The notes beneath the pieces are model-generated. The model ran no database searches and was not told where the DNA came from. It saw only the letters and a program-made list of their open reading frames with translations. The translations under genes and the position numbers were made by a program. A DNA stretch of 64,000 nucleotides from the IMG/VR virus record IMGVR_UViG_3300033153_013547, positions 197,125 to 261,124 of that record. The stretch is one strand, 5' to 3'. Within the stretch, counting starts at the first letter, position 1; each line of letters starts with the position of its first letter. Positions 13,567-63,595 of the stretch are shown here, one piece after another.

Positions 13567-13580
13567 GAACACTACATCCA

Positions 13581-37457: not shown

Positions 37458-38417
37458 CTAAAACCCCAACAGTTCCTTGACTTCCTTCAGACTAAATTCA
37501 TCAGGATCCATACCATATGGGGTGTCAATAATAGTGGTTACACCCCTATATCCTACACTATTCATCATAGTCAAAAACCTTGTTGCCATATCATCTCCGC
37601 CTTCATCTCCATCTCTAAAGCACAAGATATGATCAAATGAAGATAAGAGCTGAGCTTGTATAAAACTTATTGACTTACCCATGGAAGCTACTGCCTGAAT
37701 TCCATATTCAAACATTTTCATAACCTTGAACTCACCTTCCACAAGCACAATATATGATGAATCATCTATGTTGCTGTAATTGAATAATATTCTTGACTTA
37801 CTGACACCAGAGGGAACTGTCACATATTTACTGTGTGCTTTACCTGATATATCTCTCAACTTAAACATAACAGGATCACCCACACAATTAAATACAGGAA
37901 TAACAACCCTATCACGAAAGATGCCATAAGGCTTGCCCATAGCTATCTGAAAAAACTTGAGAGTATATGGATTGAAATCTCTATATGTATTGATAGACAT
38001 ACAATGCTCTCTATATGCCACTCTTAGATCATGCACTATCTGAGGATTTGCTGTAAATTCTTCTCCATCTCCAAAACCAACTAAAGGATGTTGTTGAGAA
38101 TGATATTTATTAGGAATCTTTCTACCCAAAAGTCCTTCAAGTTTTTTCTTTGCAGCAGCAATGTCACAATGTTCTACAAGTGATATGAGCTGGGCAATAC
38201 TACCCCCTGCTTGACATTTTGTGTGACATATGTACACAAGCTTCTGGTAATTTACATTGAGAGCTTGTGGATTGGTTCCTCCATGGATTGGGCAAGAGGA
38301 GTAAATTTCATGCCTTGCTGGATTGACTCTTACATTTATAGCTCCATATCCACTGAGTAACTCTACAATAACATCACAGCTTGATCTACTCTCATTACTG
38401 GATGTTTTGTTGCTCAT
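37458..38417 (-). CDS. dnaG: DnaG-type DNA primase (Zn finger + TOPRIM)
   Basis: CPIH...CHTKC zinc finger, RVVIPV, LVEGE, CFRDGDEGG, DPDE. Confidence 0.9.
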   Translation of the reverse strand: MSNKTSSNESRSSCDVIVELLSGYGAINVRVNPARHEIYSSCPIHGGTNPQALNVNYQKLVYICHTKCQAGGSIAQLISLVEHCDIAAAKKKLEGLLGRKIPNKYHSQQHPLVGFGDGEEFTANPQIVHDLRVAYREHCMSINTYRDFNPYTLKFFQIAMGKPYGIFRDRVVIPVFNCVGDPVMFKLRDISGKAHSKYVTVPSGVSKSRILFNYSNIDDSSYIVLVEGEFKVMKMFEYGIQAVASMGKSISFIQAQLLSSFDHILCFRDGDEGGDDMATRFLTMMNSVGYRGVTTIIDTPYGMDPDEFSLKEVKELLGF

Positions 38418-38430
38418 ATTTTGCTCATCA

Positions 38431-39438
38431 CTACATCTCAAAACAGGATGTGGCTTGTTTCCCTGACTCAATAGCAGAATAAATTGTTTTATATTTTTCT
38501 ATACACTTATTATAGCCAAAATTGTTAATCACATGATCAAAGATTTTGCTATAATTCATAGCAGTTGTCATACATTTCTTATACGACAATCCTGCTTGCT
38601 CAATCAATGATAGAATATTAGCATCAGGATTCTTCCGATTCTTACGCATGATAGCATCAGCTATGTACATAGAAGATATTTCTGTTACAGCATCACCCAA
38701 TGTACGCATTTCACTGGTACTTATATTGGGTGGATTGAAGTCACTATTGTACAGTAACTCCCAACTATTAGGAATTACTGGTGCAACTTTACCAGTACTA
38801 TAGTTGGGTATCAAAACAGGCACCTTAGAAGCCAAACATGCTAAAACTTTGATACCTGATGTTATAACACAAGCACTTTTCTTTGCTACAAGATTGATTA
38901 GTGGCACAATAGGTGCTATCTTTAGTATTTCTGGAGGCATCTTCTCTTTGATCACAAGTTGATTCATCTCATCAACTCTATCAAAAGGTACCATCAATAT
39001 CATTGACATATTCATGCTCAGAAAAAATCTGACTGTTGATAGAGCAAGCCTACAGGCAGCAAGAGGGTTTTGGTGTTCTATCATTACTACCGTGCCACAA
39101 TAGGACCTTTTTTCTGTTATAACACAAGGAGGAGCTCTAGGTATTCCATACTTTCTGGATAAAACCAGTGAGTGACATATTGTATTTTCAGGATGTAAAT
39201 TCAGTGCTTGCTTGCATTCTTTGTCTGAATACACACTCCAAAGTACTTTATGATCCTTGAGAATATCTTTATCAAAAAGATATCCATGATAGTGCAAAAC
39301 ACCTGATCCATGCTCTGAAAAATTGTCTAAATGAACCAATTCTGACATATTGCCATTAGTCAATTGCAGAGCATGGAATACTGAATCCTCAGTTGAATAG
39401 ACATCCTGTTTATTCAATACTTGTAAAACTTTACTCAT
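38431..39438 (-). CDS. hypothetical protein, possible GT-B-fold glycosyltransferase-like
   Basis: KKSACVITSGIKVLACLASKVPVLIP loosely resembles the GT-B C-terminal Rossmann motif. Confidence 0.3.
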   Translation of the reverse strand: MSKVLQVLNKQDVYSTEDSVFHALQLTNGNMSELVHLDNFSEHGSGVLHYHGYLFDKDILKDHKVLWSVYSDKECKQALNLHPENTICHSLVLSRKYGIPRAPPCVITEKRSYCGTVVMIEHQNPLAACRLALSTVRFFLSMNMSMILMVPFDRVDEMNQLVIKEKMPPEILKIAPIVPLINLVAKKSACVITSGIKVLACLASKVPVLIPNYSTGKVAPVIPNSWELLYNSDFNPPNISTSEMRTLGDAVTEISSMYIADAIMRKNRKNPDANILSLIEQAGLSYKKCMTTAMNYSKIFDHVINNFGYNKCIEKYKTIYSAIESGKQATSCFEM

Positions 39439-39883
39439 CGACCTGCAAGCCTAAGTCCTTATCAAGTTGTGCCATTGATCTCTTATATGCTGCTTCTGTA
39501 TATGAAGATGACCACCCATAGCGTGCTCCAAATCTCATCAGAAAACTGGCAGCTCTTTTCATGGCAGTAATCCTCTGAGTTGGTGCCATAGTTACATCAA
39601 CCTGCATGGCATCAATGATTACCATAGCCACATGCAATGGATCATCTTTGCCAAAGATCTCTTCGTCCCTTTCTCTTATACGTTGTTCTATTTCTGCTAA
39701 CTGCTTGTAAGTGATCTGATCACCTGGCTTGATGTGTGGCTTGATATGTGGAGGAATAAGTTCCTCTGGAACCATATCATTTTCACTAGGCTTGGCATCT
39801 ACTTCCTCAGCAGGCTGTTCCCTTTTGTCCTCTACCACAACTTCTTCAATTACTGCCTCTTCAATCAATTTTTCATCACTCAT
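39431..39883 (-). CDS. hypothetical protein
   Basis: Acidic N-terminus; coupled ORF. Confidence 0.55.
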   Translation of the reverse strand: MSDEKLIEEAVIEEVVVEDKREQPAEEVDAKPSENDMVPEELIPPHIKPHIKPGDQITYKQLAEIEQRIRERDEEIFGKDDPLHVAMVIIDAMQVDVTMAPTQRITAMKRAASFLMRFGARYGWSSSYTEAAYKRSMAQLDKDLGLQVDE

Positions 39884-39924
39884 ACGTTCAAATACCTCCG
39901 TCTATTTATCAAACAATATCATAG

Positions 39925-40176
39925 TTAATGTTGCAATGTAGCAATAACACTCACTATATGATCGAATTTTACATAATAATATCGATCAATAACCGTAGGT
40001 TTGGTGACATCAAACATCGATCCACAGATATCTCTTCTGTCTTTCATTTGATGAACCAATTCTTCTACTTCATGAGAAGATATGTTCTCTAAATCTATTA
40101 CATGTAACTCCCCATGAATTTCCACTTTTATTTCAACATCATAGAAATCATCATCTCTAAAATTCAGTTCTTTCAT
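39925..40176 (-). CDS. hypothetical protein
   Basis: Coupled to DnaE part 3 stop. Confidence 0.55.
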   Translation of the reverse strand: MKELNFRDDDFYDVEIKVEIHGELHVIDLENISSHEVEELVHQMKDRRDICGSMFDVTKPTVIDRYYYVKFDHIVSVIATLQH

Positions 40177-41294
40177 GATGGTTCTTTTACCTCCAACTGT
40201 TCCAACTCAAACACTTTCTTAATTACTATTGTGCCTCTATTACTTACCTTTCCCTCAATACACACAGGATTATTATTAACCAGTAATCCCAGTGAGGCAA
40301 TATCTTTCTCATCATCTTCATCATAAAAATATATGCATGGTAGATGAGTTATCCCGTCAGAAATTTCAAACACAAGGTAAGGGGTTCCTTTTCTGCTAAT
40401 AAATGATCTTCTTGAAGAAACAAGACCAACATACTGCCCCTGAACCTTGCCTATTTGTCTTGATTCCGTAGGATTATGAGCTCCTGCAGGTATATTATAA
40501 GCATCTAAAATGCCACCAGAAATATACACTCCCAAGATCTCAAACTCCATGGAACTTAATTCAGCCTTACTAAACTCCCCTATGATTACAAGTTCATCTA
40601 TATCTAGATCAAGAGGTAATGGCTCACGTGATTCTGCCTTTTTATTCTTTAGCCTTGCTTTATTCTTAGCATTCCATTCATGTATTTTTCTATAAGCATA
40701 TAAGAGAGCTTTACGTGTCAGCACAACATCACTATTATCTAACAGAGGTATACCATCAAACGCACCTATTTTGATTAGATTAATCATTCCATCTTTACGT
40801 GCTGTGCCCCTAACTACAATATCCTGCACAGATTTATATGGTCCATTGTCTTCTCTGTTTTTTACAATGACACTGGCTGAATTTAGCCCCACCTTCCTTA
40901 CAGAAGTCAGCCCAAACATAATATGTCTAACTTTGTCATCGTCTTCATATGGTGTAAACATAGTACCAGAAATGTTGATCCTTGGTGGTGAGAGCTTTAT
41001 TTTCAATTGTTTACACTCCTTCATGAAATCCCTAAGAGTATTCTCAAGATCATCTCCACTTTTAGACTCAATAGCATCAATCATAGATGCAGCAATAAAA
41101 ATATGTGGCCAGTATGTTTTTACATAGGCAGTATGATAGGTCAAGATAGCATAAGATACTGAATGACTGTTCTGACTAACCAAAAATTGTTTAGCCCTTT
41201 CATCTGTTACTAGATAATTGTGAGGAGGACCATCAAGTGAAAGACTTATAAAGGCTTTTTTATTCATACCTTGTTCCCATCCATCTACAGACAA
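40173..41294 (-). CDS. dnaE: DNA polymerase III alpha part 3: C-intein (33-42 aa) + C-terminal fingers/HhH/OB domains
   Basis: ...PPHNYLV...LVSQN|SHSVSYA...AYVKTYWP, FGLTSVRKVG, LIKIGAFD, EFEILGVYISG; start TTG 41294 or ATG 41267. Confidence 0.9.
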   Translation of the reverse strand: MSVDGWEQGMNKKAFISLSLDGPPHNYLVTDERAKQFLVSQNSHSVSYAILTYHTAYVKTYWPHIFIAASMIDAIESKSGDDLENTLRDFMKECKQLKIKLSPPRINISGTMFTPYEDDDKVRHIMFGLTSVRKVGLNSASVIVKNREDNGPYKSVQDIVVRGTARKDGMINLIKIGAFDGIPLLDNSDVVLTRKALLYAYRKIHEWNAKNKARLKNKKAESREPLPLDLDIDELVIIGEFSKAELSSMEFEILGVYISGGILDAYNIPAGAHNPTESRQIGKVQGQYVGLVSSRRSFISRKGTPYLVFEISDGITHLPCIYFYDEDDEKDIASLGLLVNNNPVCIEGKVSNRGTIVIKKVFELEQLEVKEPS

Positions 41295-41748
41295 TTAATC
41301 CAGAATTGATCTTTTCATAATTCACACAAATATCCAAAAACTGATCAACAGTAGCAATAGCACTATCAGTTCCTGCTGTTTTTAGTGCTCTTGCAAATAT
41401 TTGCCTATTTTTATCCTGATCTATTACACCACGAATATTCTCCATTACATTCCACTTTTGAGCCATTTGTCTAATACAAGTCCAGTGAGTCATCAATATA
41501 GGATCCTTGTTGATATTACGTCCATATCCACGAATTGTGGGTAGTTCAGAGGCACCAGCCTGCTTAAATACTTTTGACATACTACGTATTATGCTTGATC
41601 CCTTACAATAAAAATAATCAGTTCCTGGTAACTCATCACGTTTAACTACAATAGCTGTTGTTGATCTCATCCTTGTATCTTTAGGTAATTTGATCAAATA
41701 GTAATTATTACCACATATACTAACTTTGCCAATTATATTGTTATCCAT
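41260..41748 (-). CDS. unknown 162-aa protein between the split-intein halves
   Basis: ATG overlaps the N-intein stop (ATGGATAA); its own stop overlaps the in-frame ATG of the C-intein gene (ATGAATAA). Confidence 0.7.
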   Translation of the reverse strand: MDNNIIGKVSICGNNYYLIKLPKDTRMRSTTAIVVKRDELPGTDYFYCKGSSIIRSMSKVFKQAGASELPTIRGYGRNINKDPILMTHWTCIRQMAQKWNVMENIRGVIDQDKNRQIFARALKTAGTDSAIATVDQFLDICVNYEKINSGLIVCRWMGTRYE

Positions 41749-43417
41749 CAATTAATAGTCCTTTATTATCTATTACAACTAGACAATTACACTCATTTGG
41801 CATTTTATACCCATCTTCATTGAGGAAGTAATGATCTCTTGTGCATTCTATTTCAACATTTTCATTGCCTACTTTAACTATTGGTTCATCAAAAGCAAAA
41901 GTTACTGCTCTCACAGTATTAGTTATTATTCCACCATTGCCCACATAAGAATAAATAGTATCTCCAAAGTTCAACTGATCTATTCTTACAAGACCACTTG
42001 GTGTCAAAACCAAAGTATCTTCACTCAGACACTTATTGAAACCATAATTTCCAAAACCTTCTATCTGTTCCCATAGTTTGGTAGCTTCTTCTAACGTCCA
42101 GCCTGAATGACGGACACAACCATCAATAAATTTTGGCTTAGCCTGAGCAAGCTTAGAGGACAACTTTTTACCAACAATTCTTCTTAGGTTATCCCCCTCA
42201 TTAGGACTAAACCCAGCAATTTTCTGAGCTATTTCTATAATACTTTCTTGGTATATGATAAGACTAGAAGTTTTTTCCAATATAGGTTTCAGATCATCAT
42301 GCAAATATTCTGGCTTTGTCCTTCCATGCCTAAGAGAAAGGTATTTTTCTTCAAATCCTGCTGACATAGGTCCAGGTCTGTGTAGAGCTATAACATCTGA
42401 AATATCTTCTATGCTAGTAGGCATACATTTCTGCATAGTTTTCCTGATCCCCACAGATTTCATTTGAAATAACCCAGCATACAAGCCTTTTTGCATAAAT
42501 TCAAAAACCTTAGGATCATTCATGGGAATATCATCAATAGTCATACTATTTTCAATGTATCCCATGCTATGAGCCATATTCAAAGTGTTTTGTATAACTG
42601 ACAATGTGCCAAGACCTAAAAAATCTATTTTACATAAGCCTGCTAACCCTGCAGACTTCATATCTAGTTGCACAACATTGTTACCACTAGCATCTACATA
42701 CATAGGCACAATTGACTGCAATGGCTCATTAGATATTATGATCCCAGCAGCATGCAATCCAGTCTGTCTATAATTTTGCCTGAGGGAATTAAATATAGCA
42801 ATAAATTCATCTATGTCCTCAAGACAATTTTCACCCAAAGTCTGCTTGCTTACCTCAACAATTTTAGCAACATACTGCCTTAGTTCTTCATGAATAAATA
42901 TTTCATCAGTCCCTATCCAGTCTCCAGTGCTCATATCTACATTAGTAGCAGGCAAATACATTTTAGATATCAAGCCAACAGATGCTTCTTCACTGCTTCC
43001 ACATATACATCTAACTATGTCTCTAAAAGCAGACTTAGGTTTGTATTCTGCATAAGTGCCTATGCTGGCAAAATATTTGTTACCATATTTACTTCTGACA
43101 GCATCTTTCACTCTGTCTCTACCATACTTGTCAAAATCTATGTCAAAATCTGGTTGCTCTCTTTTGACAACAAGACCAAACTCTCCATCAGGTTTTTTGC
43201 TTGTGATCCCAAGAGCATATGCTAACAATGAATTAGTCTTGTTCTTGTTGCCTGCTCCACAATCACAAGCCTTATTGATCATATAAATCATATGATCATC
43301 AACATGATAGAATTCATATAAATCAAGTTCGTTAGAGATCCTGTCCATCTCTTCTTTACTAAACTTTTTCTCCCATCGTTCAGTCTGCTGGTGACAAAAA
43401 TCCCTTAGTTGGCTCAT
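41741..43417 (-). CDS. dnaE: DNA polymerase III alpha part 2: catalytic palm/thumb/fingers + 96-aa N-intein
   Basis: PDFDIDF, HAAGIIIS, KIDFLGL, ALHRPGP, IIYQE, YGFNK|CLSEDTLVLTPSG...IECTRDH. Confidence 0.92.
   Translation of the reverse strand: MSQLRDFCHQQTERWEKKFSKEEMDRISNELDLYEFYHVDDHMIYMINKACDCGAGNKNKTNSLLAYALGITSKKPDGEFGLVVKREQPDFDIDFDKYGRDRVKDAVRSKYGNKYFASIGTYAEYKPKSAFRDIVRCICGSSEEASVGLISKMYLPATNVDMSTGDWIGTDEIFIHEELRQYVAKIVEVSKQTLGENCLEDIDEFIAIFNSLRQNYRQTGLHAAGIIISNEPLQSIVPMYVDASGNNVVQLDMKSAGLAGLCKIDFLGLGTLSVIQNTLNMAHSMGYIENSMTIDDIPMNDPKVFEFMQKGLYAGLFQMKSVGIRKTMQKCMPTSIEDISDVIALHRPGPMSAGFEEKYLSLRHGRTKPEYLHDDLKPILEKTSSLIIYQESIIEIAQKIAGFSPNEGDNLRRIVGKKLSSKLAQAKPKFIDGCVRHSGWTLEEATKLWEQIEGFGNYGFNKCLSEDTLVLTPSGLVRIDQLNFGDTIYSYVGNGGIITNTVRAVTFAFDEPIVKVGNENVEIECTRDHYFLNEDGYKMPNECNCLVVIDNKGLLIDG
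41744..42031 (-). mobile_element. N-terminal half of a naturally split intein
   Basis: Cys1 after FNK; block A CLSEDTLV; block B TxxH (TRDH); ORF ends after 96 aa. Confidence 0.88.
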
Positions 43418-43460
43418 ATCCTCTCCACTATATTTCTTTTGTCTCAGTAGCTTCTTTGTC

Positions 43461-43580
43461 TAATGGTTCTCTCATTCAGTCTGCTTCTTTGTCAAACAAC
43501 TGGGGCATCATGGATTCTAACATATCTGTTACATCATCTAACCTTTCCTTTAGTATATCAATCTTTTCTTCCAGTGCTTC
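43461..43580. repeat. degenerate ~120-bp direct repeat (other copy ~44441-44560)
   Basis: Encodes ILK(E/D)(R/K)L(D/E)D..DMLES.MP.L.DKEAD in both genes. Confidence 0.8.
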
Positions 43581-43793
43581 AAGCTTCTGACTCATGTCTT
43601 CTGTATAGATCACATGGGTTGGAGCAGGAGGATAACCACCATCAGGATAAGGTAAGGGAGTACCAATAAATGAGTCAGGAATTAGTGGATCCTGCTTCCA
43701 TGTATAATCAGTTGTTCCACTATCTGTGATTTCTATCCAATTGTGATCATTGGTGCGGTAAATTCCATGCATACTATTATCATCACTAAACAT
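43476..43793 (-). CDS. hypothetical protein with coiled-coil C-terminus, paralog of 44415-44786
   Basis: Shared C-terminal ~40 aa. Confidence 0.65.
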   Translation of the reverse strand: MFSDDNSMHGIYRTNDHNWIEITDSGTTDYTWKQDPLIPDSFIGTPLPYPDGGYPPAPTHVIYTEDMSQKLEALEEKIDILKERLDDVTDMLESMMPQLFDKEAD

Positions 43794-43801
43794 TTACACT
43801 C

Positions 43802-44440
43802 TCACTTCCTTTGGTAATTGTGCGCCAATAATTGTATATCATCACTATGACGCAAACCTACTTTCTCTAACCTCTCTGCCTCGCGTTTTATTACATACAA
43901 ACACAATGACGGCTTAGCAAGTAACATTCGCTTTGTTGCAGTAAAGGCATAATCATTACAATAACCATAATAACCACCCTTACACAAATTATCTAATTTG
44001 TGGGCATAACGTTTGCCTGCAGAGGTAAGATCTAGTCTATAGGTGAATTTTTCATTCCACTCTAACATTTGAAAGGGAAATTCTGCCACATAATGACTTT
44101 CTATGTATGCCCTATATGGATCAAGTAAATAAGCATGTCGACCTGCATTTATTCTGGTAGTCTTGATCATCCCAAATGCCACTAAATAATTTATTGCTTC
44201 AAATAGTTGCTTACTACATGCACCATACTTTGTCATAATAAAATCATTTTTCAGATTTATTTTATTATGCCTATGTCCTAGTATACCTATACCAGGATGC
44301 ATGTAAAGACACAGATAAGTCATGTCATCAAGACCCAGCACAGGTTTACTATTGTTATAAAACAGTATTCTAACAACATAATCACGTATACCAAGGTCTA
44401 GAGGTTGCCATGTATTACCATTCATGAGCACTATCCTCAT
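43802..44440 (-). CDS. winged-helix protein, possibly DUF4065/SocA (Panacea)-like
   Basis: DFIMTKYGACSKQLFEAINYLVAFGMI...LTSAGKRYA resembles the F...YGP.S..L...L...G.I / LT..G pattern. Confidence 0.35.
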   Translation of the reverse strand: MRIVLMNGNTWQPLDLGIRDYVVRILFYNNSKPVLGLDDMTYLCLYMHPGIGILGHRHNKINLKNDFIMTKYGACSKQLFEAINYLVAFGMIKTTRINAGRHAYLLDPYRAYIESHYVAEFPFQMLEWNEKFTYRLDLTSAGKRYAHKLDNLCKGGYYGYCNDYAFTATKRMLLAKPSLCLYVIKREAERLEKVGLRHSDDIQLLAHNYQRK

Positions 44441-44786
44441 CTAACGATTTTCTCATCCAATCTGCTTCCTTATCAGACAATTTTGGCATCGCAGATTCTA
44501 GCATATCTATTATGTCTTCTAACTTATCTTTTAGTATGCCAATATCTTCTTGCAATTTATCAATCTTTTCTGCCATGGATAGAGGCATAGCATATGATAA
44601 CATGTTGGACATCATTGCCTGTGTATCTATTGCAACATCATTGTTGGGATCATTAAGAACACGTAAATCATCAATATGATAATCACCCTGCACTCTATTT
44701 ACGTCTGCTACCAATCTTGCTCTTGCTGGCTCTGACAACGATGACCAATCAAAAGATTGCAGAATTTCACCATCGTAATATACCAC
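44415..44786 (-). CDS. hypothetical protein with coiled-coil C-terminus, paralog of 43476-43793
   Basis: Shared C-terminal ~40 aa. Confidence 0.65.
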   Translation of the reverse strand: MVYYDGEILQSFDWSSLSEPARARLVADVNRVQGDYHIDDLRVLNDPNNDVAIDTQAMMSNMLSYAMPLSMAEKIDKLQEDIGILKDKLEDIIDMLESAMPKLSDKEADWMRKSLDEDSAHEW

Positions 44787-46018
44787 TATTCTTCACCTAT
44801 TCCAAAATCATCATAGCACACAGTAGATCTACCATAATTCAAAAACCTGCTAAACATCAGCCCATACTTTATTGGATCAACACTAGTTATACCAAGTGAG
44901 TATGCTGCAATTGATCCTGCTCCAGAACCTCTGCCTGCACCCACACCAACATTCAGCGTCCTTGCAGTATCTACTATATCAGACACTAAAAGAAAATAAT
45001 CTACATAGCCCATCTTGTCAATAATGAACAATTCATGATCTAATCTATCAGTAATTTCTTTAGACAAATTCTGGCTATAGAGTTGTCTGGCTCCATCATA
45101 GCATTTGTCTCTAAGAATTTTTGTCTTATATGCATATGAAAGTGTCTTGTCTCTGATCCTAAATTCAGGCATATATGATTTGCCAAGAGCAAGTTTAAAC
45201 TCTACCTTATCTACTATTTCCATTGTATTCTGACAAAGAGGGATTGCATCTATGCCCACACTATTATATCTTTCTATAATTTCATCATATGAATGAAGAT
45301 AATAAGAATGAGTGCCTGAGAATGGTTTAATACCTATTTTGTTAGATGAAGAAAACCTTACTGCCTGCAAGAAGCCATGAGCCTTCCAGTCAGAAGCATT
45401 TAGATAATGGGCATCTGTGGCACAAATAGTTTTGATGCCCATCTCATTCAGAAATACTTCTGCCACAACCTTTTCTTCTGGAATATCATGTGCATGAACT
45501 TCAAGATAAAAATCTTCCTTGAAGGCTTCTACAAACCTATCAAGCAGGGTTTTATACACATCCATATGTCCTGATGTAATAAGCCTTTGCAGACTTCCAG
45601 ATATACAACTTGCTGTTGCTATGAGACCTTCAGAATTCTGCAAAACGCTGTCCATGGGAAAAATCGTTCGGCTGATATTGTCTCTACCCACTCTCGTTTT
45701 AGAAGCACCCAAAAGCTTGAGAAGATTATGCCAGCCTGCTTCGGTCTTTGCTATCAGAACCAGATGTGACTTAGGATATTCTATGCCAAAATCAGAGTTG
45801 ATATACTTTACATAAGCTTCTATTGCTATAATAGGTTTAATACCATAATTCTCACATTCAATAGTTTGCTCAACACAAGCACCCAATGAGCCATGATCAC
45901 TTATGGAGACTGCTTTTTGTCCTAGTTCTATAGATCTTTTAATAATATCTTTGGGTCTTCCAAGGGCATCAAGAACAGAATAAGAACTATGAATATGAAG
46001 ATCACAGAATTCACTCAC
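44786..46018 (-). CDS. dnaE: DNA polymerase III alpha part 1: PHP domain + start of palm
   Basis: LHIHSSYSVLDA, SDHG, HLVLIAK, ATDAHYL, GYVDYFL, GRGSGAGS, ITSVDP, FSRFLNYGR, then stop. Confidence 0.92.
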   Translation of the reverse strand: MSEFCDLHIHSSYSVLDALGRPKDIIKRSIELGQKAVSISDHGSLGACVEQTIECENYGIKPIIAIEAYVKYINSDFGIEYPKSHLVLIAKTEAGWHNLLKLLGASKTRVGRDNISRTIFPMDSVLQNSEGLIATASCISGSLQRLITSGHMDVYKTLLDRFVEAFKEDFYLEVHAHDIPEEKVVAEVFLNEMGIKTICATDAHYLNASDWKAHGFLQAVRFSSSNKIGIKPFSGTHSYYLHSYDEIIERYNSVGIDAIPLCQNTMEIVDKVEFKLALGKSYMPEFRIRDKTLSYAYKTKILRDKCYDGARQLYSQNLSKEITDRLDHELFIIDKMGYVDYFLLVSDIVDTARTLNVGVGAGRGSGAGSIAAYSLGITSVDPIKYGLMFSRFLNYGRSTVCYDDFGIGEE

Positions 46019-46260
46019 TATCTATCTCCCTTCAGGCTTTTCTCATTTTTATGCAATTGCATTTGTATTTTCTTGATACAATCTCGTAGAGAGTCTATAG
46101 AAAGCATGGCAAGTGCTATTTCATGTGTCTCCTCATCCAATATATGCTTATTTGATATAAATTCTAACACATTAGCCTCAAGCCATTCTAAATTAAGAAG
46201 ACAGACATCTCCTTTATCTACTACAGACTGAGCACTTTCTGGTGCTTTTATTACATTCAT
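46018..46260 (-). CDS. hypothetical protein
   Basis: Coupled ORF. Confidence 0.5.
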   Translation of the reverse strand: MNVIKAPESAQSVVDKGDVCLLNLEWLEANVLEFISNKHILDEETHEIALAMLSIDSLRDCIKKIQMQLHKNEKSLKGDR

Positions 46261-46958
46261 TATGCATCTCCTGCAACATCAAGACCACCAAATGTTTTCA
46301 TGTCTGGCAGACTAATAGAAGGTTTTATGTCTTGATTACCTTGACTTGAGAATTGTTTATGCTCTTCTCTGCTACTAAATAAATCTAGATAGGTAGCATG
46401 GGCTATCATTATGGCTGCTGCAATAACTCCACCAACATCCTCCCTACCAAGAATTTTAGATCCCAACATAACACCTGTTAAGATCTCTTGTCTGTTATCA
46501 TTTATTCCAAGCCGTTGATCCCTAGTAAATACTGGTAGCAAATGGAAGAGCATCTTAGACACAAAATCTACCCACATATCAGTTACATCATAATATTTGT
46601 GCTTGCAAGACCCCAATATGAAATTGATAAATATTGCCGTCGTTACTACAGATTCTATGAGCAATGGATGCTCAAGATCACCTAAATCAACGTCACTCAA
46701 AACTAATTGCATATCCAATGTTTCATTTAATTTACCACCATCAAAATCAAGCCTACGCAATTCGTTTGTTCCTGCTGATATGAATTCTTTACTGATACTA
46801 TCTGCGGATTTGGTTATCATTTTGACAGCTTCTGCAGGAGTTAGTGTAACGACCTCAGCACCAGATTTCTCCTCTAGCTCAGATTCAATCTCACTCAAAT
46901 CTTTTGCGTTTTTCATCCTAGACAATTTTCCACCCATAAGATCATTCAAAATTGACAT
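46260..46958 (-). CDS. hypothetical protein
   Basis: Coupled 232-aa ORF. Confidence 0.55.
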   Translation of the reverse strand: MSILNDLMGGKLSRMKNAKDLSEIESELEEKSGAEVVTLTPAEAVKMITKSADSISKEFISAGTNELRRLDFDGGKLNETLDMQLVLSDVDLGDLEHPLLIESVVTTAIFINFILGSCKHKYYDVTDMWVDFVSKMLFHLLPVFTRDQRLGINDNRQEILTGVMLGSKILGREDVGGVIAAAIMIAHATYLDLFSSREEHKQFSSQGNQDIKPSISLPDMKTFGGLDVAGDA

Positions 46959-48868: not shown

Positions 48869-50053
48869 CTATAATCCAGCAGCAAATCCTGTTTTCTCAT
48901 GATCAACAGGATCACCACGTAATCCCACGCTCAGTTCAATAGCTCTTGTAATCACTTCATCTACTAAACCAAGTTCTTTCAACTTTATAGCTAGCCTACC
49001 CTCACCCTGTTCCTTAACTTCTGTTCCATCAAGAGATTTATAATTATACCATGAACCAGATCTTGTAATTAGTCCCTCTATCTTCCCTGCCTGGATTACT
49101 CCATGCAAATTGTCAAATCCTGGTTCATGAAAACCATAAAATTGACTCTTACTATCAGCTATATTGACTTGTTTCACCCAAAATCTTGTGGCCACAGGTT
49201 CATTACCAAATGGAGAACCATATTTATTCTTCATTACACGAACATTGATTTCATAGGCATATGCCTCTTTGATCTTGTTCTTGTCAATATCATTAGCAGT
49301 TATACATGGCTTGGTATATTTATAGAGATCTATTCTCTGCTGAGCATAATATGGCAAAGCCCTTCCTCCACCACCAATCTTAGTCTTAGCCCCAGGCATT
49401 GTAGCCATTGTTGCTCTATACTGATTGGTGATCAAAAGAGTGCATTCATTAGGTGAAAGTAACCTAGGAATCCTCCTAAAAAAAACAGAATTTAGCTTAG
49501 GTTTGGTGTCCCTGATTCGAGCATCTATATTCATCTGCCCATCACTCTTACCTCTGATTTTGTCAATAGTATCTGCTGTTTGCATAGTATCCATAGAATC
49601 TATGATCACTAACCCAAACAAACCAGTAGCTACTGCTTCATTTATGAAATTGTAGATCTCCTCAGCACTTTCAATGCTAGACATATTATCTACAACAAAG
49701 AGCTTATTACTCTTAGTATCACCCTCATAGTTGCCACCTAGTGCATTATACCATGAAGGATCTAAGGATTGTTCTAGATCAAAAAACAACACTGATCTAT
49801 CATAATTCTTGATCATGCTTATAGCTGATACAATACACAAGGCTGTTTTGCCACTATGTTCATCACCCAGTATTTCAACTGTCTTACCAACACCCCATCC
49901 TCCATGCAACATATAATCCACTGCAGAAGAACCTGTGGCATAAAACTTCTTTTCCATAACCTTATCTGTTTTGAGAGGAATGTTGAACTTGGCTCTCAGA
50001 TCATTGAGAATTTGGGAGGCAGGAGTGACTTTACTAACTTCTTTCTTACTCAT
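48869..50053 (-). CDS. recA: RecA/UvsX-like recombinase
   Basis: EILGDEHSGKT, FDLEQSLDP, IIDS, ITNQYR, GGRALPYYA..RIDL, KNK. Confidence 0.88.
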   Translation of the reverse strand: MSKKEVSKVTPASQILNDLRAKFNIPLKTDKVMEKKFYATGSSAVDYMLHGGWGVGKTVEILGDEHSGKTALCIVSAISMIKNYDRSVLFFDLEQSLDPSWYNALGGNYEGDTKSNKLFVVDNMSSIESAEEIYNFINEAVATGLFGLVIIDSMDTMQTADTIDKIRGKSDGQMNIDARIRDTKPKLNSVFFRRIPRLLSPNECTLLITNQYRATMATMPGAKTKIGGGGRALPYYAQQRIDLYKYTKPCITANDIDKNKIKEAYAYEINVRVMKNKYGSPFGNEPVATRFWVKQVNIADSKSQFYGFHEPGFDNLHGVIQAGKIEGLITRSGSWYNYKSLDGTEVKEQGEGRLAIKLKELGLVDEVITRAIELSVGLRGDPVDHEKTGFAAGL

Positions 50054-53143: not shown

Positions 53144-54454
53144 CTACAATTCCATAACTTTCATTCTTGATAAATCAAAATACAAAAGAACTCTAGCATC
53201 TAACCCTCCAAACCTTCCTTTTAACACATGAAGACTAAGGTTGGCATTAGGTTGCCCACAGGCTGCTGCCTTTGCTTCACTTAGGGGTTCCAAAGCAATA
53301 ATATTATCTAAGTGTCTCACAATGCCATAAGAATCCCCCATACTACGTAAAGTAAGTTCTTCTCCTATTGTTGATCCTCCAGACGATCCTCTTTTGGATT
53401 GAGCAGCAGTTACTACTGCTACTTGATGTTTCTGTGCAATATTATTTTTCAACCTATCTGCAAATCTTGAAAGAGTTTTGTACCAGTTATCTGCATCAGA
53501 ATCAGATTCTGGCTTGATATGATCTAATACAATAACTTCTGTACCATAAACCTGAATATGCTTTAACATTATGTTAAACATTTCCTCATATTTAACAAAG
53601 GACATATACAAGAATTTACAATCATTAGTCTTGGAAACCTGAGTAAAAACATCTTCCAATTTCTTCTTGTAAGAAATAGATGCAATAGCCTCTCCACTCT
53701 CTATATCCTTGATCCTAACTCCAGACAGATTGGCTACTATTTTCACAAAGATCTCATCTTCATTCATTTCTGTGTTTATATGAAGAACTTTAAGTCCTTG
53801 TTGATAAGCCAATTTTGCTGTCAATACTGATAACAATGAAGACTTGCCAACACCTGAATTTGCTAAAAAACAAGTAACATTTCCAGGGACAAGCCCCCCT
53901 AATCCTTTATATGAATCATCTAAAGTAGGAAACCCCATAGGGTATCCCTCTACTGCTGGCCTACCAGTACGATATTTATCAATGAGCCCATGCCCCAGTG
54001 ATGTTGTAGTACTTTCTGCCGTCCCAGCTCTCAATACATCAACAACATTAGACACATGATTTACAATTTCAGCCTCACTGGTTGATGAAGAAATTTTGTT
54101 ACCAATATTACTGAGTTGCCCTTTGGCTAACTCTTTAGTCCTTTCACATCTTATAAAATCTATGTGTTCAGATATGTTGTCCTTACTTTCTCCTAAATTT
54201 CTCAACCTTGAGCATTCTTCCATGAACATTGCTTGATCAGTAACAACATTAGCTCTTGTTAACATTGTTAGAATAGCATGTTCAGTTATAGTTCTTCCAT
54301 CTTCTGTTATTGAATGAGCAGCAAATACTATACGCTGAAACAATTTATTCGAAAACAGCGTATAATCCAACCTATCAATATATCTAACCCATACCTCTGG
54401 ATTGTTCAGTAGTGCTGATAATAACGCTTCTTCTGCTCTTTTTGTATCACTCAT
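53144..54454 (-). CDS. dnaB: DnaB-like replicative helicase
   Basis: GFPTLD...GGL.PG, ANSGVGKS, NTEM, IVLDHI, AAQ, VLKGRFG. Confidence 0.9.
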   Translation of the reverse strand: MSDTKRAEEALLSALLNNPEVWVRYIDRLDYTLFSNKLFQRIVFAAHSITEDGRTITEHAILTMLTRANVVTDQAMFMEECSRLRNLGESKDNISEHIDFIRCERTKELAKGQLSNIGNKISSSTSEAEIVNHVSNVVDVLRAGTAESTTTSLGHGLIDKYRTGRPAVEGYPMGFPTLDDSYKGLGGLVPGNVTCFLANSGVGKSSLLSVLTAKLAYQQGLKVLHINTEMNEDEIFVKIVANLSGVRIKDIESGEAIASISYKKKLEDVFTQVSKTNDCKFLYMSFVKYEEMFNIMLKHIQVYGTEVIVLDHIKPESDSDADNWYKTLSRFADRLKNNIAQKHQVAVVTAAQSKRGSSGGSTIGEELTLRSMGDSYGIVRHLDNIIALEPLSEAKAAACGQPNANLSLHVLKGRFGGLDARVLLYFDLSRMKVMEL

Positions 54455-56448
54455 AAATTTTCCCTCAAATCATCAGGCACTATTACTTGTTTGTCTGGAT
54501 CACCTACAGCATCAAAAATATCAATCTGCTTACTATGAGATGTTGTTGTTATTGTATCCACAAGTTTCATAGCAACAGCTATGCAATACCCAACAGGTTT
54601 GATATCTTTCTTATATTTCATTCTCTGCTCAGTAATTTCAATAGCCTTTTTTATGAGTGTATTAGGTATTTGCTTTTTCTTACAAGCACCAAAAATAGCC
54701 TTGTATTCCTTAGGTGAAATCACAGGAAGATCCATCTTCTTCACAGAAATAGATCTATTATTTGTTGTTTTGATCCCTTCATCCGTGACATTAGCTTGTT
54801 TTATGAATCTTGATACTATTGCTGGTTGTAGAAACTTCCCTTTGCCAACAGTTCCTAAGTTTGTTGGGTAATTTATACTCAGGAAGTGCTTAGCTCTTGT
54901 CATAGCTACATAAAATAACCTAGCTTCTTCATGTAGGTTTTCGTTTCTTTCATGAGGTATATTGCCATCATACACATCAACAATATACACATCTGACCAT
55001 TCAAGTCCTTTGGCACCATGCATAGTACTGATAATAACTCTATCTTTATTATCATTTTTACTTCTGTCCTCAGCAAGTGCCACACTTTCTATGAGTTGAT
55101 CAGAACTTTCACAGCCCAATATAAATTCTTCTATGTTTGTTGGAATGTCTAAAAGATCAATAAAGGGCTCTACAAGATTACCTGAACCAGGTAAGTTTGC
55201 AATGAAACTATCATATATTTCTCTTAGTCTAATTACTTTTTTGTTAGCAGACTCTGGATCAGCAAGCATCAAATCCACTGTTTTCTTGCCAATACCCTTG
55301 GTCATTTTCATATCAATACCAATAATTCTATACCAACTAACAAAGTCTTTTTGGTTTTGCTTGAGCCTATAAAAAGCAACAATGTCTTTTAGTACTGCTC
55401 TTTCAGAAATTGATATACCATATTTCATTTTATATGGAATATTACTAAGCTTTATGTCCTTCTCTATATTTAACAGACTGCTTGCTGTTCTACCTAATAC
55501 AACCATCTGACAATAAGGAACACCTGTTACACCATGACGTGTTCGTATGCTTTTGATCACATGCTCTGCCTGTGCTTTCTGAGTAGAAAACGATTTGACA
55601 TTGACAATCCCTGTCTCATTGCTACAAGAAATCAATGAGACACTAGGCCCATGCTCTCCAATGAACTTAGATGCTGCACCTAATATCTTTGAGTCAGACC
55701 TATAATTGACATCCAAAGAAATAACTTCAGCATTTTTATATCTATCAGCAAAATTCAACATAAAACTTGGTTCAGCATATCTAAAACTTTCATAGATGCA
55801 CTGGTTAGGATCACCAATAACAAACAATTTCCCTGTATACAATAAGTCAATCAGTTTTTGTTGATAACAATCTATATCTTGATATTCATCAATCAAGATG
55901 TGATCAAATTTATTGTTCCATAGTGAGTTTCTATCAGACAAGAGATCTATTGCTCTTTCTATCATTCTATCAAAATCAATAGCTTCACACTCTGCCAAGT
56001 GTGCATCATATTTCTCAATATCTGCAACACGTGTCATAGGACAATCTGGTGCATCTAATGCAAATATAGAAAGATACTCAATAGGACTTGTCCCCTTTGG
56101 GACTATTATGCCAAGTTTTTTAGCACATCGTTTTACATCATCTTCATCATATATAGTAAGTTTGCCAAAAGCCTCAGTGCATATTTGATATGCCAAACCA
56201 TGAAAAGTTATGGCAAATACTTTATTATTGTGGATCCTATCTTTGAGCTCCTTTGCTGCTTTATTGGTAAATGTAACAGCAAGTATATTACAAGGATCAA
56301 CCCCTTCTTGGATGAGCCTATCAACTCTATGTTGCAAACAAAATGTCTTGCCAGACCCAGGGACAGCAACAATGGCTATATTATCAGAACCAGATGTTAT
56401 AGCAAGCTTCTGCTTGTCATTGGCATATTCAGGTGGTTTATAATTCAT
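54451..56448 (-). CDS. uvrD: UvrD/PcrA superfamily-1 helicase
   Basis: AVPGSGKT, VTFTNKAA, DEYQD, GDPNQCIY, TMHGAKGLEW, EARLFYVAMTRAK. Confidence 0.93.
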   Translation of the reverse strand: MNYKPPEYANDKQKLAITSGSDNIAIVAVPGSGKTFCLQHRVDRLIQEGVDPCNILAVTFTNKAAKELKDRIHNNKVFAITFHGLAYQICTEAFGKLTIYDEDDVKRCAKKLGIIVPKGTSPIEYLSIFALDAPDCPMTRVADIEKYDAHLAECEAIDFDRMIERAIDLLSDRNSLWNNKFDHILIDEYQDIDCYQQKLIDLLYTGKLFVIGDPNQCIYESFRYAEPSFMLNFADRYKNAEVISLDVNYRSDSKILGAASKFIGEHGPSVSLISCSNETGIVNVKSFSTQKAQAEHVIKSIRTRHGVTGVPYCQMVVLGRTASSLLNIEKDIKLSNIPYKMKYGISISERAVLKDIVAFYRLKQNQKDFVSWYRIIGIDMKMTKGIGKKTVDLMLADPESANKKVIRLREIYDSFIANLPGSGNLVEPFIDLLDIPTNIEEFILGCESSDQLIESVALAEDRSKNDNKDRVIISTMHGAKGLEWSDVYIVDVYDGNIPHERNENLHEEARLFYVAMTRAKHFLSINYPTNLGTVGKGKFLQPAIVSRFIKQANVTDEGIKTTNNRSISVKKMDLPVISPKEYKAIFGACKKKQIPNTLIKKAIEITEQRMKYKKDIKPVGYCIAVAMKLVDTITTTSHSKQIDIFDAVGDPDKQVIVPDDLRENL

Positions 56449-59965: not shown

Positions 59966-60667
59966 TCATTCCTGTGCCCCTTTTGCTATTTCTAGCGCGG
60001 CCTCAAACTCAATCGCACGTTTACACAGCCAGTGCAAGTTAGGCAGTTTCTTCGCCGGTTTACTATCGATATCGGCAACATAGATAACAGCATAAGCAAC
60101 ACGGGCGGCGGCATAGGCAGCGGCATAGGCAATAGCAGGAACGGCGATATCGGCAGCATAGACAACAGCAGAAGCAACGCGGGCGGCGGCATTGGCAACA
60201 TCGACAGCATCGGCGGCAATGGTGGCATAGATGGCATGGGCACAGACAGCGCGGGCAGCACTTTCACTTCTATCGCTGCCGTTCAACCAAGCGACCGCCC
60301 ATCGCATAAAATCTTTGTGCTTGCAAATAACCCTTGCTAATTCTGTTGCCACATGAATACGTGCTAACAAGGGAAACTCCGGTACTTGTATTTCCCGCCT
60401 GAGCGTAATTGTATGGCAATCGCACTTGCAATATTCCTCACGGCTAATTTCGCCATCAGCCACAAACAAGCGCATAGTTGATTCGTCAAAATCAGTCTGT
60501 GTAGGATTCATTAAAACGGCCTGCAATGGGCTAGTGTAGGCATGATAATGATCGGCACTACACAACCCACGCTTTCCCGACAGCCACGGTACAGGCTTGC
60601 CGAGTTCCCACTGGAACCCGTCATAGGTTTGCATATTTGCATCCGTTAACTTATATACTCGCGTCAT
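59966..60667 (-). CDS. phage protein with Ala-rich helical repeats
   Basis: YKLTD...T...QW..G; AARAV/AAYAAA repeats; tandem DNA repeats at ~60080-60195. Confidence 0.65.
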   Translation of the reverse strand: MTRVYKLTDANMQTYDGFQWELGKPVPWLSGKRGLCSADHYHAYTSPLQAVLMNPTQTDFDESTMRLFVADGEISREEYCKCDCHTITLRREIQVPEFPLLARIHVATELARVICKHKDFMRWAVAWLNGSDRSESAARAVCAHAIYATIAADAVDVANAAARVASAVVYAADIAVPAIAYAAAYAAARVAYAVIYVADIDSKPAKKLPNLHWLCKRAIEFEAALEIAKGAQE

Positions 60668-60747
60668 TTTGTGTCCTCCCTTGCTGTCCCCAGTAAACAA
60701 GCACAATGTCGTCCAGCTTATCCGCCTGCGCTGTTATCTTAACCGTG

Positions 60748-60969
60748 CTACCATCCAACAACGTATGGACGAAACTCGCGGTCTCGGTCACGACGGGCGG
60801 TTCGGGGGAGCGATTCTAAATTAGTCCCTATGGTTTCACCAACCAAAAAACATATCAAACCAAGCAGTAATACTCCATAGAATCCATTCAGCTTTTTACT
60901 AATCCAATCGCGCATCGTTAATGTACCTCTCAAGTAGACTTTCCAGATATACCCGCGTATTAAAGGCAA
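60748..60969 (-). CDS. small membrane protein (true start probably MRDWISKK)
   Basis: One TM helix. Confidence 0.4.
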   Translation of the reverse strand: MPLIRGYIWKVYLRGTLTMRDWISKKLNGFYGVLLLGLICFLVGETIGTNLESLPRTARRDRDREFRPYVVGW

Positions 60970-61402
60970 AGCGCATCTTGTGTTTGTTGGCCTTGTACCA
61001 TTCGAGAACGCTAAGTTTTGAACCCTGCGCTTTAGCTGCTCCCCACCAGTCGCAAATCATTTCCTTTATAGCGGAGCCAGACATCGAATAACACTTCAAC
61101 CCGTCTTCTGTGCCTATTACCCAATGTTGCCAGTGATGGTCATTGTGATGCACATGATGCAGCCACGCACGCTCGAAAGCGGGGTCTCCCGTATCTGTCG
61201 GCTTGTAGTAACCAGTCGGATTCCGCGGGTTCTTGTTAGCAAAAAAACGTGCATATGGAAAGAATTCGGCGGGTGTCCATTTCGATAAATCGTGAATCAA
61301 GCCACGCCAGTACAGCCCGCAACGAAAACAGGCAAGCCGCACATACCATTGGTGGCGCAATAAGTACACGGCATATTTCAACAGTCCAATCATCTCACGC
61401 AT
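60899..61402 (-). CDS. DUF5662-like HD-superfamily protein
   Basis: LLRH.WYV...GLIHDLSKW...AWLHH.H.N.HH...EMICDW. Confidence 0.75.
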   Translation of the reverse strand: MREMIGLLKYAVYLLRHQWYVRLACFRCGLYWRGLIHDLSKWTPAEFFPYARFFANKNPRNPTGYYKPTDTGDPAFERAWLHHVHHNDHHWQHWVIGTEDGLKCYSMSGSAIKEMICDWWGAAKAQGSKLSVLEWYKANKHKMRFAFNTRVYLESLLERYINDARLD

Positions 61403-61805
61403 CGTTTTTCTCCTTTATTGTTATACCGTCCAACGCAGCACTCAGCGGCGTACCATATTTATCTAGCATTTTACCCAATGCTTCTGCGTATCGCGAGCCA
61501 AAGCCCTTGTGTTTTTCATCTATCTCCGGCGGGATATCGTCCACTACGCCCAGGAAATAAATGAACTGCATCAGTGCCTTGGTAGCATTGTAGAAGCGCT
61601 CACACTCGACTAAGAACTCACGTAAATCAATGACGTCTTGCTTATCCATCGTTGCCACAATCCAACCCGCGCGTACCAAATGGTACAATTCGCGGCGTGT
61701 CAATGTGGCTAGAAACCGCGCGCAAACCATCTTTTTTGAGCCACACCCCCAACACTTCTTCAGCATCGGGCCGGGATCGATTCCGAGTGTCCAATTACTC
61801 ATCAT
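61395..61805 (-). CDS. hypothetical protein
   Basis: GGAGG RBS before ATGATG at 61805/61802. Confidence 0.5.
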   Translation of the reverse strand: MMSNWTLGIDPGPMLKKCWGCGSKKMVCARFLATLTRRELYHLVRAGWIVATMDKQDVIDLREFLVECERFYNATKALMQFIYFLGVVDDIPPEIDEKHKGFGSRYAEALGKMLDKYGTPLSAALDGITIKEKNDA

Positions 61806-62016
61806 CGGCCTCCTTAAAGCGCTTATAAAAGGATTTACAAGCACAAATGAAGGCCTTGGTTTTATTAAACGCAGAACCGAAATCTCGAATAACGAAGCCT
61901 CCTTTTTCATGCGCTTCACTTAGTACCCACCCGTAAGTTCCAGGTACTAAATCTAACCCAATTCTTATCCTTGCCTCTTTATTTGGTTTACAGGTAATTA
62001 AATATATCTCACTCAT
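61795..62016 (-). CDS. small protein, paralog of 63266-63502
   Basis: AF..ACK.FY...E.DDE shared. Confidence 0.6.
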   Translation of the reverse strand: MSEIYLITCKPNKEARIRIGLDLVPGTYGWVLSEAHEKGGFVIRDFGSAFNKTKAFICACKSFYKRFKEADDE

Positions 62017-62476
62017 TACCCACCTCCAGCAATTCGGGGTTGTCGTAACGGTTGCCGACGCGCTTTAAGCGCAACAAGTCACATATAACAAAGTCGTACT
62101 CCAGATGGTCTTTATTTGCAATATCAACAAGTACAAAGCAGGGGTTCACTTTGTCATATTCCACCGTTGCTGTCCAAATCCTTTCGGTTTTGGGATATCG
62201 CACAATGCCCTTTTGAACGTAAGAAACGTATTCACACTGCACCACGTCCCCCTCGTAAATCTCAGCGCCGTCAACGTCCAGCAGGTCGGTGAACTGGCCG
62301 ACGGTTTCGGGGTCTACCCTTTGATCGAGCCAACCCCATCTATAGCTTTCAAACGGTGTATCGCGGTAGGGTTTGGTTTGGGGTATGATGTAATAATCAT
62401 CATCCAATACCACCAGGTTACCATAAATCCACTCGCCGTTATCAACGCGCTTACCTCTAAACTTAATCTCTCTCAC
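62009..62476 (-). CDS. yopX: YopX-family protein (tandem copy 3)
   Basis: MREIKFRGK...TVGQFT...IYEGD...GNRYDNPELL. Confidence 0.9.
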   Translation of the reverse strand: MREIKFRGKRVDNGEWIYGNLVVLDDDYYIIPQTKPYRDTPFESYRWGWLDQRVDPETVGQFTDLLDVDGAEIYEGDVVQCEYVSYVQKGIVRYPKTERIWTATVEYDKVNPCFVLVDIANKDHLEYDFVICDLLRLKRVGNRYDNPELLEVGNE

Positions 62477-62858
62477 TTTTCACCTCCAGCAATTCGGGAT
62501 TGTCGTAACGGTTGCCGACGCGCTCGCAACGCCTCAGGTCAAGCATTGAAATAGAAACGTTTTTTTGCTGGTGCTCACCGCGCTTATAAGGGCGAAAAGC
62601 ATAGTTCGACCATACAATCTCATATACGCCTATGCAGCCATCTCGCTTGTATAGCGAACTAACAATATCTCCTTCCCAAATTTCCACACCGTCCTTATCC
62701 TTGAAACCGGTGTATTGCCCGATGGTTTCAGGGTCAGCAGCATGACGTTGACCGTCAATAATGATGTAATGGACACCATTAAAGTATTCGTAACCGCCTG
62801 TCCTCCATTCGCGCTGGCCATACGTCCATACTTTGCCCCTAAACTTAATTTCTCTCAT
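62463..62858 (-). CDS. yopX: YopX-family protein (tandem copy 2)
   Basis: MREIKFRGK...TIGQYTG.KD..G.EIWEGD...GNRYDNPELL. Confidence 0.9.
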   Translation of the reverse strand: MREIKFRGKVWTYGQREWRTGGYEYFNGVHYIIIDGQRHAADPETIGQYTGFKDKDGVEIWEGDIVSSLYKRDGCIGVYEIVWSNYAFRPYKRGEHQQKNVSISMLDLRRCERVGNRYDNPELLEVKSERD

Positions 62859-63502: not shown

Positions 63503-63595
63503 CGTCGACCTCCTTAGGTATACTTAATACCTTATCCGCCCACTCTTTGTCGCTCTCTTTTTTTTCTGCTCGCTCAACTGACTAAAACATCCCTA

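Follow-up and report, generated by a model that had tools for sequence, protein, structure and literature searches.

Fractured genes that combine split inteins with free-standing homing endonucleases were described by Dassa et al. in 2009, and three of the loci reported were DnaE genes fractured at sites other than the cyanobacterial one, including one with a Vsr-like gene (PMC2677866). In such genes the N-terminal intein half (IntN) measures 88-105 amino acids (aa), the C-terminal half (IntC) 33-54 aa, and the gene in the gap overlaps the IntC by 6-69 bp (PMC2677866). The split DnaE inteins of cyanobacteria, represented by Ssp and Npu, are inserted at Y/CFNK (a slash denotes the insertion point throughout), and the C-junction of the wild-type Ssp DnaE intein is CFNK (PMC2664965). 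In this study we analysed 64,000 nucleotides (positions 197,125 to 261,124; hereafter the window) of the 261,124-bp IMG/VR viral contig UViG_3300033153_013547, which comes from a large uncultured phage with about 261 kb of sequence. The gene for DnaE, an enzyme resembling the alpha subunit of DNA polymerase III, is broken up on the minus strand of the window, and on the sequence evidence one of the breaks holds a genuine naturally split intein, a very divergent copy of a known arrangement at a site that is common in uncultured phages.

Profile searches against Pfam and PHROGs revealed that DnaE is encoded as three pieces, the second and third of which carry the putative intein halves. The continuity of the polymerase across the intein is exact. 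The PHROGs profile phrog_405 stops at its position 793 on Lys462 of piece 2 and picks up at 794 on the Ser that follows Gln-Asn in piece 3, and the NCBIfam profile PRK05673 reaches approximately position 752 in both pieces. The extein part of piece 2 matched positions 3-260 of the 260 in Pfam DNA_pol3_alpha, DNA_pol3_finger, phrog_405 at 433-793 and PRK05673 at 348-752, whereas that of piece 3 matched phrog_405 at 794-1042, Pfam HHH_6 (E 1.5e-16) and PRK05673 at 752-1052. When joined, the two exteins correspond to intein-less bacterial DnaE proteins such as that of Companilactobacillus (EKFGNYGFNKSHSVAYS), and removal of the intein restores an uninterrupted conserved DnaE sequence, ...GFNK-SHSVSY.... 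This places the predicted insertion point at FNK/SH in the fingers domain, with the conserved Ser of FNKSH as the +1 nucleophile of the C-extein. An earlier reading of this DNA made from the sequence alone had stated that splicing would restore FNKSH, and that the site lies four residues from the cyanobacterial one; the profiles bear out the former, and the Ssp junction confirms the latter, the distance being in the downstream direction. The residue strings quoted in that sequence-only reading were also present where it had placed them, on the minus strand.

The intein nature of the N-half is supported by several comparisons. The IntN begins at Cys463 of piece 2 with CLSEDTLV (block A) and runs via ECTRDH (block B) to LLIDG. 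Its Cys463 aligns with residue 1 of Hint/intein-like N-termini, and the T-R-D-H of block B aligns with TKDH of Npu and with TLDH of the family of inteins found at the same site in other DnaE genes (described below), in which the His is invariant. The TIGR01445 intein_Nterm profile aligned with it over positions 1-82 of 83 at E 6e-4, although the score of 20.6 bits was under the curated cutoff of 24.5. A HMMER search of 1.84 billion representative proteins returned 76 matches to the IntN at E<1e-3; among the 62 that we inspected nearly all start at the Cys opening a Hint or intein-like N-terminus. Moreover, a hidden Markov model (HMM) of the FNK/S family built without the window sequence found the IntN in a six-frame translation of the window at E 2e-9, and the top eight matches in a phmmer search of the PDB were all inteins, with the Npu DnaE IntN first (E 0.018). 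An AlphaFold2 model made with the family alignment (mean predicted local distance difference test, pLDDT, 74.9) was closest in fold to the IntN chain of Npu DnaE (TM-score 0.58, probability 1.00), with Hint or intein structures at all of the ranks 1-40, and the IntN alone is modelled as the N-terminal part of a Hint fold. Thus, the IntN is assigned to the Hint domain by its sequence, by the family profile and by its predicted fold.

The gene order also follows the fractured-gene plan (Table 1): the N-extein with the IntN, a free-standing open reading frame (ORF163) and the IntC with the C-extein follow one another on one strand, the IntN ends in a stop codon, and the IntC has a start of its own. 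As in the published cases, the protein interrupted is a replication enzyme encoded by a phage-like genome, the middle gene runs into the start of the IntC, and the lengths of the IntN and, with either of its two possible starts, of the IntC lie within the published ranges. The sequence-only reading had proposed a naturally split intein of the fractured-gene type in a phage DnaE, and the extein continuity together with the Hint features of the N-half bear this out. Unlike the published fractured genes, the locus lacks a hairpin spacer of 27-51 nt before the gap gene, since the ATG of ORF163 overlaps the stop codon of the IntN, and the gap gene is neither GIY-YIG nor Vsr-like.

Table 1. Coordinates within the window of the DnaE pieces, the predicted intein halves, the gene between them and the surrounding replication genes.
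Feature	Position	Strand	Length (aa)	Description
DnaE piece 1	44786-46018	-	410	PHP domain and first ~100 positions of the palm (NTPase) domain; TAG stop
DnaE piece 2, whole	41741-43417	-	558	Complete palm and fingers, then the intein N-half; TAA stop
Piece 2, N-extein	42032-43417	-	462	Palm and fingers; ends EGFGNYGFNK
Intein N-half (IntN)	41741-42031	-	96	Coding 41744-42031; TAA at 41741-41743
Middle gene (ORF163)	41260-41748	-	162	Coding 41263-41748 from ATG; TAA at 41260-41262
Putative intein C-half (IntC)	41169-41294	-	33 or 42	33 aa from ATG 41267; 42 aa from TTG 41294
DnaE piece 3, C-extein	40173-41168	-	331	Coding 40176-41168, then TGA; begins SHSVSYA; rest of fingers, helix-hairpin-helix and OB-like regions
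Primase	37458-38471			Replication module
UvsX-like recombinase	48869-50053			Replication module
DnaB-like helicase	53144-54454			Replication module
Helicase	54451-56448			Replication module

The DnaE pieces stand in a phage replication module that also encodes a primase, a UvsX-like recombinase, a DnaB-like helicase and another helicase (Table 1), a setting that we count in favour of the split-intein reading. The IntN-bearing gene, ORF163 and the IntC-bearing gene are in three different frames. The ATG of ORF163 overlaps the stop codon of the IntN (ATGGATAA), the stop codon of ORF163 overlaps the ATG of the IntC (ATGAATAA), and both junctions are ATGnnTAA overlaps typical of coupled genes, which suggests that the expression of all three genes is coupled. 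In addition, no terminator-like sites were found within 39800-46300, and since the genes are tightly packed on one strand with no such site between them, they are probably co-transcribed. The GC content at third codon positions was 0.18 in the IntN, 0.24 in ORF163 and 0.21 in the IntC compared with 0.27-0.30 in the exteins, which hints, if weakly, that the insert and the exteins differ in history. Stop-codon recoding was considered as a cause of the breaks and rejected: both relevant stops (those of the IntN and of ORF163) are TAA, all three stop codons are in normal use in the window (25 TAA, 16 TAG and 15 TGA at the ends of ORFs), and the recoding of any one of them lengthens ORFs unspecifically.

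Among the characterised inteins, those of Ssp and Npu share with the window intein the host protein, a class-1 chemistry and the lack of a penultimate His (Npu ends in IASN), and they are the best PDB matches of the IntN in sequence and in fold, although the sequence similarity is weak. They differ from it in having Cys instead of Ser at the +1 position and in being encoded by two genes at distant loci with no intervening gene. The intein gp41-1, which originates from a fractured gp41 helicase gene of a phage metagenome, has the same fractured layout and ranked directly behind the DnaE inteins among the PDB matches. However, it resides in another host protein and ends in THN, that is, with a penultimate His.

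The leader of piece 3 reads ...AFISLSLDGPPHNYLVTDERAKQFLVSQN and ends ...PPHNYLVTDERAKQFLVSQN, so that FLVSQN stands right before the Ser at the +1 position. The block-F His, invariant in the family, is present (HNY), the penultimate residue is Gln, and the terminal Asn is kept. Only His25 and Asn42 are invariant in the alignment of the family IntCs, and the window has both. We infer that this leader is the C-half of the intein from its position before the exact continuation of the extein, its length, the two invariant residues and the HNY motif that it shares with one subgroup of the family. With regard to where the IntC begins, the two possible starts have different merits. Of 40 gene starts sampled in the window, nearly all are ATG, and most are preceded by a Shine-Dalgarno sequence of the GGAG type 6-10 nt upstream. 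Upstream of the ATG of the IntC there is a weak purine-rich stretch, whereas no such signal precedes the TTG, which has a TAA codon directly upstream; thus, the ATG start has the better translation signals. At the same time, the TTG start yields an IntC of the family length that keeps a conserved Gly.

To survey the site, IMG/VR was scanned with the strict pattern [NR]Y[GA]FNKC (allelic loci are labelled L005-L028). The scan uncovered 24 further loci, 19 of which are split and four contiguous, the remaining one being cut by the end of its contig. In the split alleles the IntN measures 88-114 aa and is followed by a stop codon, and a separate gene encoding an IntC fused to the rest of DnaE is present in 19 of 19; the contiguous viral inteins measure 144-378 aa. 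The gaps of the split loci are mostly 0.3-1.7 kb with both genes on the same strand, the extremes being 3.8 kb in L022 and 4.3 kb, with the genes on opposite strands, in L012. The genes in them include, in several loci, DUF559/Vsr-like proteins or LAGLIDADG endonucleases, and also several larger proteins that match no Pfam family; the gap of L008 is empty. A further split allele, P0026, came from the HMMER search; its DnaE ends in RYAFNK/CLANDTL and stops 91 aa after the Cys. No DnaE C-piece was found within 5 kb downstream of it, and the halves of this allele therefore appear to be dispersed. In P0026 (L002:6001-9072) we also observed that the DnaE piece has a contiguous LAGLIDADG-type intein (FGVV/CFDSNT...IIVKN/CFQEQ) beside the split IntN. 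The site is occupied in bacterial chromosomes as well: four DnaE genes of Gemmatimonadota (L029, L040, L100 and L107, in Longimicrobium, Gemmatimonas and relatives) contain contiguous inteins of 427 aa at FNK/SH, which end in IIVHN/SHS. Among isolated phages in GenBank no intein at FNK/S was found, although an unannotated faecal metagenome record (MT835601.1) possibly has the site.

The sequence-only reading had set the site apart from the cyanobacterial one and called the pair new, but the site has other occupants in nature: FNK/S inteins are present in the 24 IMG/VR loci, in P0026 and in the four Gemmatimonadota genes, and split DnaE inteins at non-cyanobacterial sites as such had been on record since 2009 (PMC2677866). 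FNK/S itself may be one of the sites of those DnaE loci, judging by the likeness of the gap endonucleases: a gap protein of the L005 type has DUF559 at residues 207-292 of 301, and the published DnaE-2 endonuclease has its Vsr-like region at 196-315. A literature search for FNKSH together with intein returned no paper.

The alleles fall into two IntC types. The +1 residue is Ser in all 19 split alleles and is universal at FNK/S because it is the conserved Ser of FNKSH. The penultimate residue of the split alleles is Ser in eight, Lys in seven and Arg in four, and in none of them is it His; at this site a penultimate His is confined to the bacterial inteins and to three of the four contiguous viral ones. 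In one IntC subgroup (TYSPEM...HNY...H[KR]N) the block-F Asp is replaced by Ser or Asn, as it is by Ser in the window IntC. The sequence-only reading had listed the penultimate Gln, the Ser at the block-F Asp and the Ser at +1 and called the intein atypical on their account. The residues are as listed, yet among the FNK/S alleles, and in view of the IASN ending of Npu, only the choice of Gln at the penultimate position is unique. As the Ser at +1, the lack of a penultimate His (seen in Npu too) and, in one subgroup, the Ser or Asn at the block-F Asp recur among the alleles, we argue that these features reflect a habit of the lineage rather than decay. The family IntN profile matched the Npu and Ssp DnaE inteins at E of about 1e-18 to 1e-19 compared with 1e-10 for gp41-1, and the family IntC profile matched intein C-termini that end at the terminal Asn, with no preference for the Npu and Ssp DnaE inteins.

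The window intein resembles the FNK/S alleles in its insertion point, Cys1 and Ser+1, in being split with a gene in the gap, as most of them are, in the non-His penultimate residue of all the split alleles and in the HNY motif of one subgroup. However, its IntN is only 19-34% identical to theirs, its loop between blocks F and G is longer, its middle gene is unrelated, the IntC falls outside the family profile, and the tail of the IntN and the head of the IntC do not align with the family. The latter two are exactly the segments that border the inserted gene, and their alteration agrees with the published proposal that the stop upstream and the start downstream come from the invading element (PMC2677866). 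By sequence the window copy is a singleton and very divergent. Consistent with this, megablast of 40000-46100 against GenBank phages gave no match, word-based searches of 5.8e9 proteins with piece 2, piece 3 and ORF163 returned only the sequences themselves, and scanning IMG/VR with a single protein brought up no contig other than that of the window.

In some allelic loci, further breaks in DnaE were observed. The DnaE of L010 (6715-8064, plus strand) is interrupted by another split intein as well, its IntN-bearing gene opening with an IntC (...HTYNAEGLAVHN/SAAGSLVSY) at GRG/SAAGS, near where pieces 1 and 2 of the window part without an intein. In L005-L009 and L015 the IntN gene has an N-extein of only about 180-200 aa and starts just before GxTKGVFQLES, which implies a DnaE in more pieces; these starts have no obvious IntC-like leader.

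The middle gene gave few leads. ORF163 had no match in Pfam, PHROGs, NCBIfam or PADLOC, and none of the intervening ORFs of more than 20 allelic loci was similar to it in phmmer and tblastn comparisons. The ESM Atlas offered no usable lead (the best feature matches, at 0.80, were to unnamed clusters), and the single-sequence AlphaFold2 model was poor (pLDDT 49.6) and had no fold match in Foldseek. On our own estimate, the chance of 163 stop-free codons at 35% GC is about 6e-6, and it is very unlikely that an open frame which fills the gap exactly arose by chance. Its 3' end overlaps the start of the IntC by 8 nt (ATG) or 35 nt (TTG). A hairpin sequestering the ribosome-binding site before ORF163 was not supported, as the start region folds like shuffled sequence (z -1.0). 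We describe ORF163 as an orphan in the slot of a homing endonuclease and do not call it one. The only recognisable homing-type nuclease found in the window is a protein of 360 aa (18234-19316, minus strand) whose C-terminal domain is an HNH endonuclease; it is unrelated to ORF163.

Taken together, we propose that a naturally split intein of class-1 type interrupts DnaE at FNK/SH, and that after translation its IntN and IntC would come together as a single Hint fold and carry out trans-splicing. Cys1 would first undergo an N-S acyl shift, and transesterification would then pass the chain to Ser+1; the terminal Asn would cyclise and an O-N shift would follow, leaving a polymerase chain with the junction ...GFNK-SHSVSY.... 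The residues on which this depends, namely Cys1, the Thr and His of block B, the block-F His, the terminal Asn and Ser+1, are all kept. ORF163 occupies the slot that in allelic loci belongs to free-standing Vsr-like or LAGLIDADG homing endonuclease genes, and is most likely a mobile element, its remnant or its replacement, which broke a once-contiguous mini-intein and rewrote the tail of the IntN and the head of the IntC.

We consider it likely that the two halves are active, splicing in trans and thereby restoring the fingers motif. Several observations weigh against this. The last 18 or so positions of the family IntN model fail to align with the window IntN, the tail of which is about five residues longer than in the alleles. 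The IntC did not match the family and subgroup IntC HMMs significantly (E 0.65-2.8) and had no match in a phmmer search of the PDB, and with the ATG start it would be a 33-aa peptide without the first beta-strand and without the Gly common to all allelic IntCs. Furthermore, a penultimate Gln is seen in no other allele, the block-F Asp is replaced by Ser, the family libraries, the model and the comparison with allelic gap genes reveal no nuclease signature in ORF163, and no close relative was found. The features of the two halves could all be taken as marks of a decayed split intein, whose halves may bind to each other but no longer splice, so that DnaE would be a non-covalent complex held together by them or be nearing the state of a pseudogene; the same DnaE does tolerate one intein-free split, between pieces 1 and 2. 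Decay of this kind nevertheless seems unlikely to us. No residue that the family holds invariant or that class-1 splicing directly requires has been lost, the penultimate His is missing from all 19 split alleles and the Asp from one subgroup, and the characterised Npu intein ends in ASN. Moreover, the break falls within the most conserved motif of the fingers, where about 130 aa of unspliced Hint sequence would presumably be hard to tolerate.

The lack of significant similarity between the IntC and anything else could also mean that only the IntN derives from an intein and that the leader of piece 3 is an unrelated peptide brought in by the inserted element, in which case no Hint fold could form. 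We judge this very unlikely, as the last residue of the leader, directly before the conserved Ser, is Asn, and as the leader contains His-Asn-Tyr like the HNY subgroup and, at 42 aa, has the right length and the conserved Gly. It is still harder to believe that the split is an artefact and that the phage has one contiguous intein with an endonuclease insert, interrupted by two false frameshifts. The contig is a metagenome assembly with no second copy for comparison, but an artefact would require two separate -1 shifts which both happened to create clean ATGnnTAA overlaps of the coupled-gene type; ORF163 has no similarity to intein endonucleases, and the 96 aa of the IntN and the length of the IntC fit the 19 independently assembled split alleles. 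The preferred explanation, a functional split intein, can be extended to a more far-reaching one, which we regard as unlikely: that the pair works with an unusually short, 33-aa IntC lacking the first strand, with Gln before the terminal Asn and with a split-junction interface rewritten by the inserted element, that ORF163 is the founding example of a novel type of mobile element that fractures genes, or of homing nuclease, and that the phage FNK/S inteins are the nearest relatives of the cyanobacterial split DnaE inteins, which would point to a phage origin of the latter.

If active, the pair would be one more natural trans-splicing system with Cys1/Ser+1 chemistry, and its distance in sequence from Npu and gp41-1 would make it a candidate orthogonal tool for protein ligation. 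The sequence-only reading had proposed a probably orthogonal pair that phage replication needs, and both proposals, like splicing itself, are treated here as hypotheses. In phages, inteins are frequent at the FNK/S position of DnaE: at least 20 split alleles occur there, none of which has a penultimate His, and their gaps hold a Vsr-like gene, a LAGLIDADG gene, an unassigned gene or none. Together with the contiguous viral and Gemmatimonadota relatives, these alleles offer a natural series in which the breakage of inteins by mobile genes, and the later evolution of the split forms, can be studied, and the survey of the family may prove more useful than the single pair from the window. For the phage itself, the arrangement means that no fewer than three gene products have to be brought together to make the replicative polymerase.

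The division of DnaE between pieces 1 and 2 is of another kind. Piece 1 matched Pfam PHP (E 5e-37), DNA_pol3_alpha at positions 2-101 of 260 and phrog_405 at 42-440. The two pieces are separated without an intein and overlap in content, as residues 301-400 of piece 1 and residues 4-100 of piece 2 both match the palm profile at approximately 2-101. In a tblastn comparison, residues 302-400 of piece 1 were 31% identical to 43109-43408, and the first 100 or so residues of piece 2 repeat the end of piece 1 in degenerate form. In P0026 and in most allelic loci the IntN-bearing gene also opens with such a degenerate segment, and because of this recurrence the split into a PHP piece and a polymerase piece seems to be an old trait of the phage DnaE lineage. 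Between pieces 1 and 2 (43443-44786, minus strand) there are three ORFs of 123, 212 and 105 aa to which no function could be assigned. The 123-aa and 105-aa products have a common C-terminal segment (53-59% identity) and lie on either side of the 212-aa ORF in the manner of a direct repeat; their similarity continues beyond the TGA of the 105-aa ORF, where its 123-aa paralog has TGG (Trp).

Elsewhere in the window, a protein of 1564 aa (8887-13581, minus strand) matched neither PHROGs nor Pfam, and one of 1047 aa (1389-4532, plus strand), searched against PHROGs only, had no match there. At the end of the window, within 60001-64000, the GC content rises from about 0.36 to about 0.47, and the region encodes three tandem paralogs of the YopX family (62009-63330) as well as DUF5662 and DUF7666 proteins, and it may be a separately acquired block.

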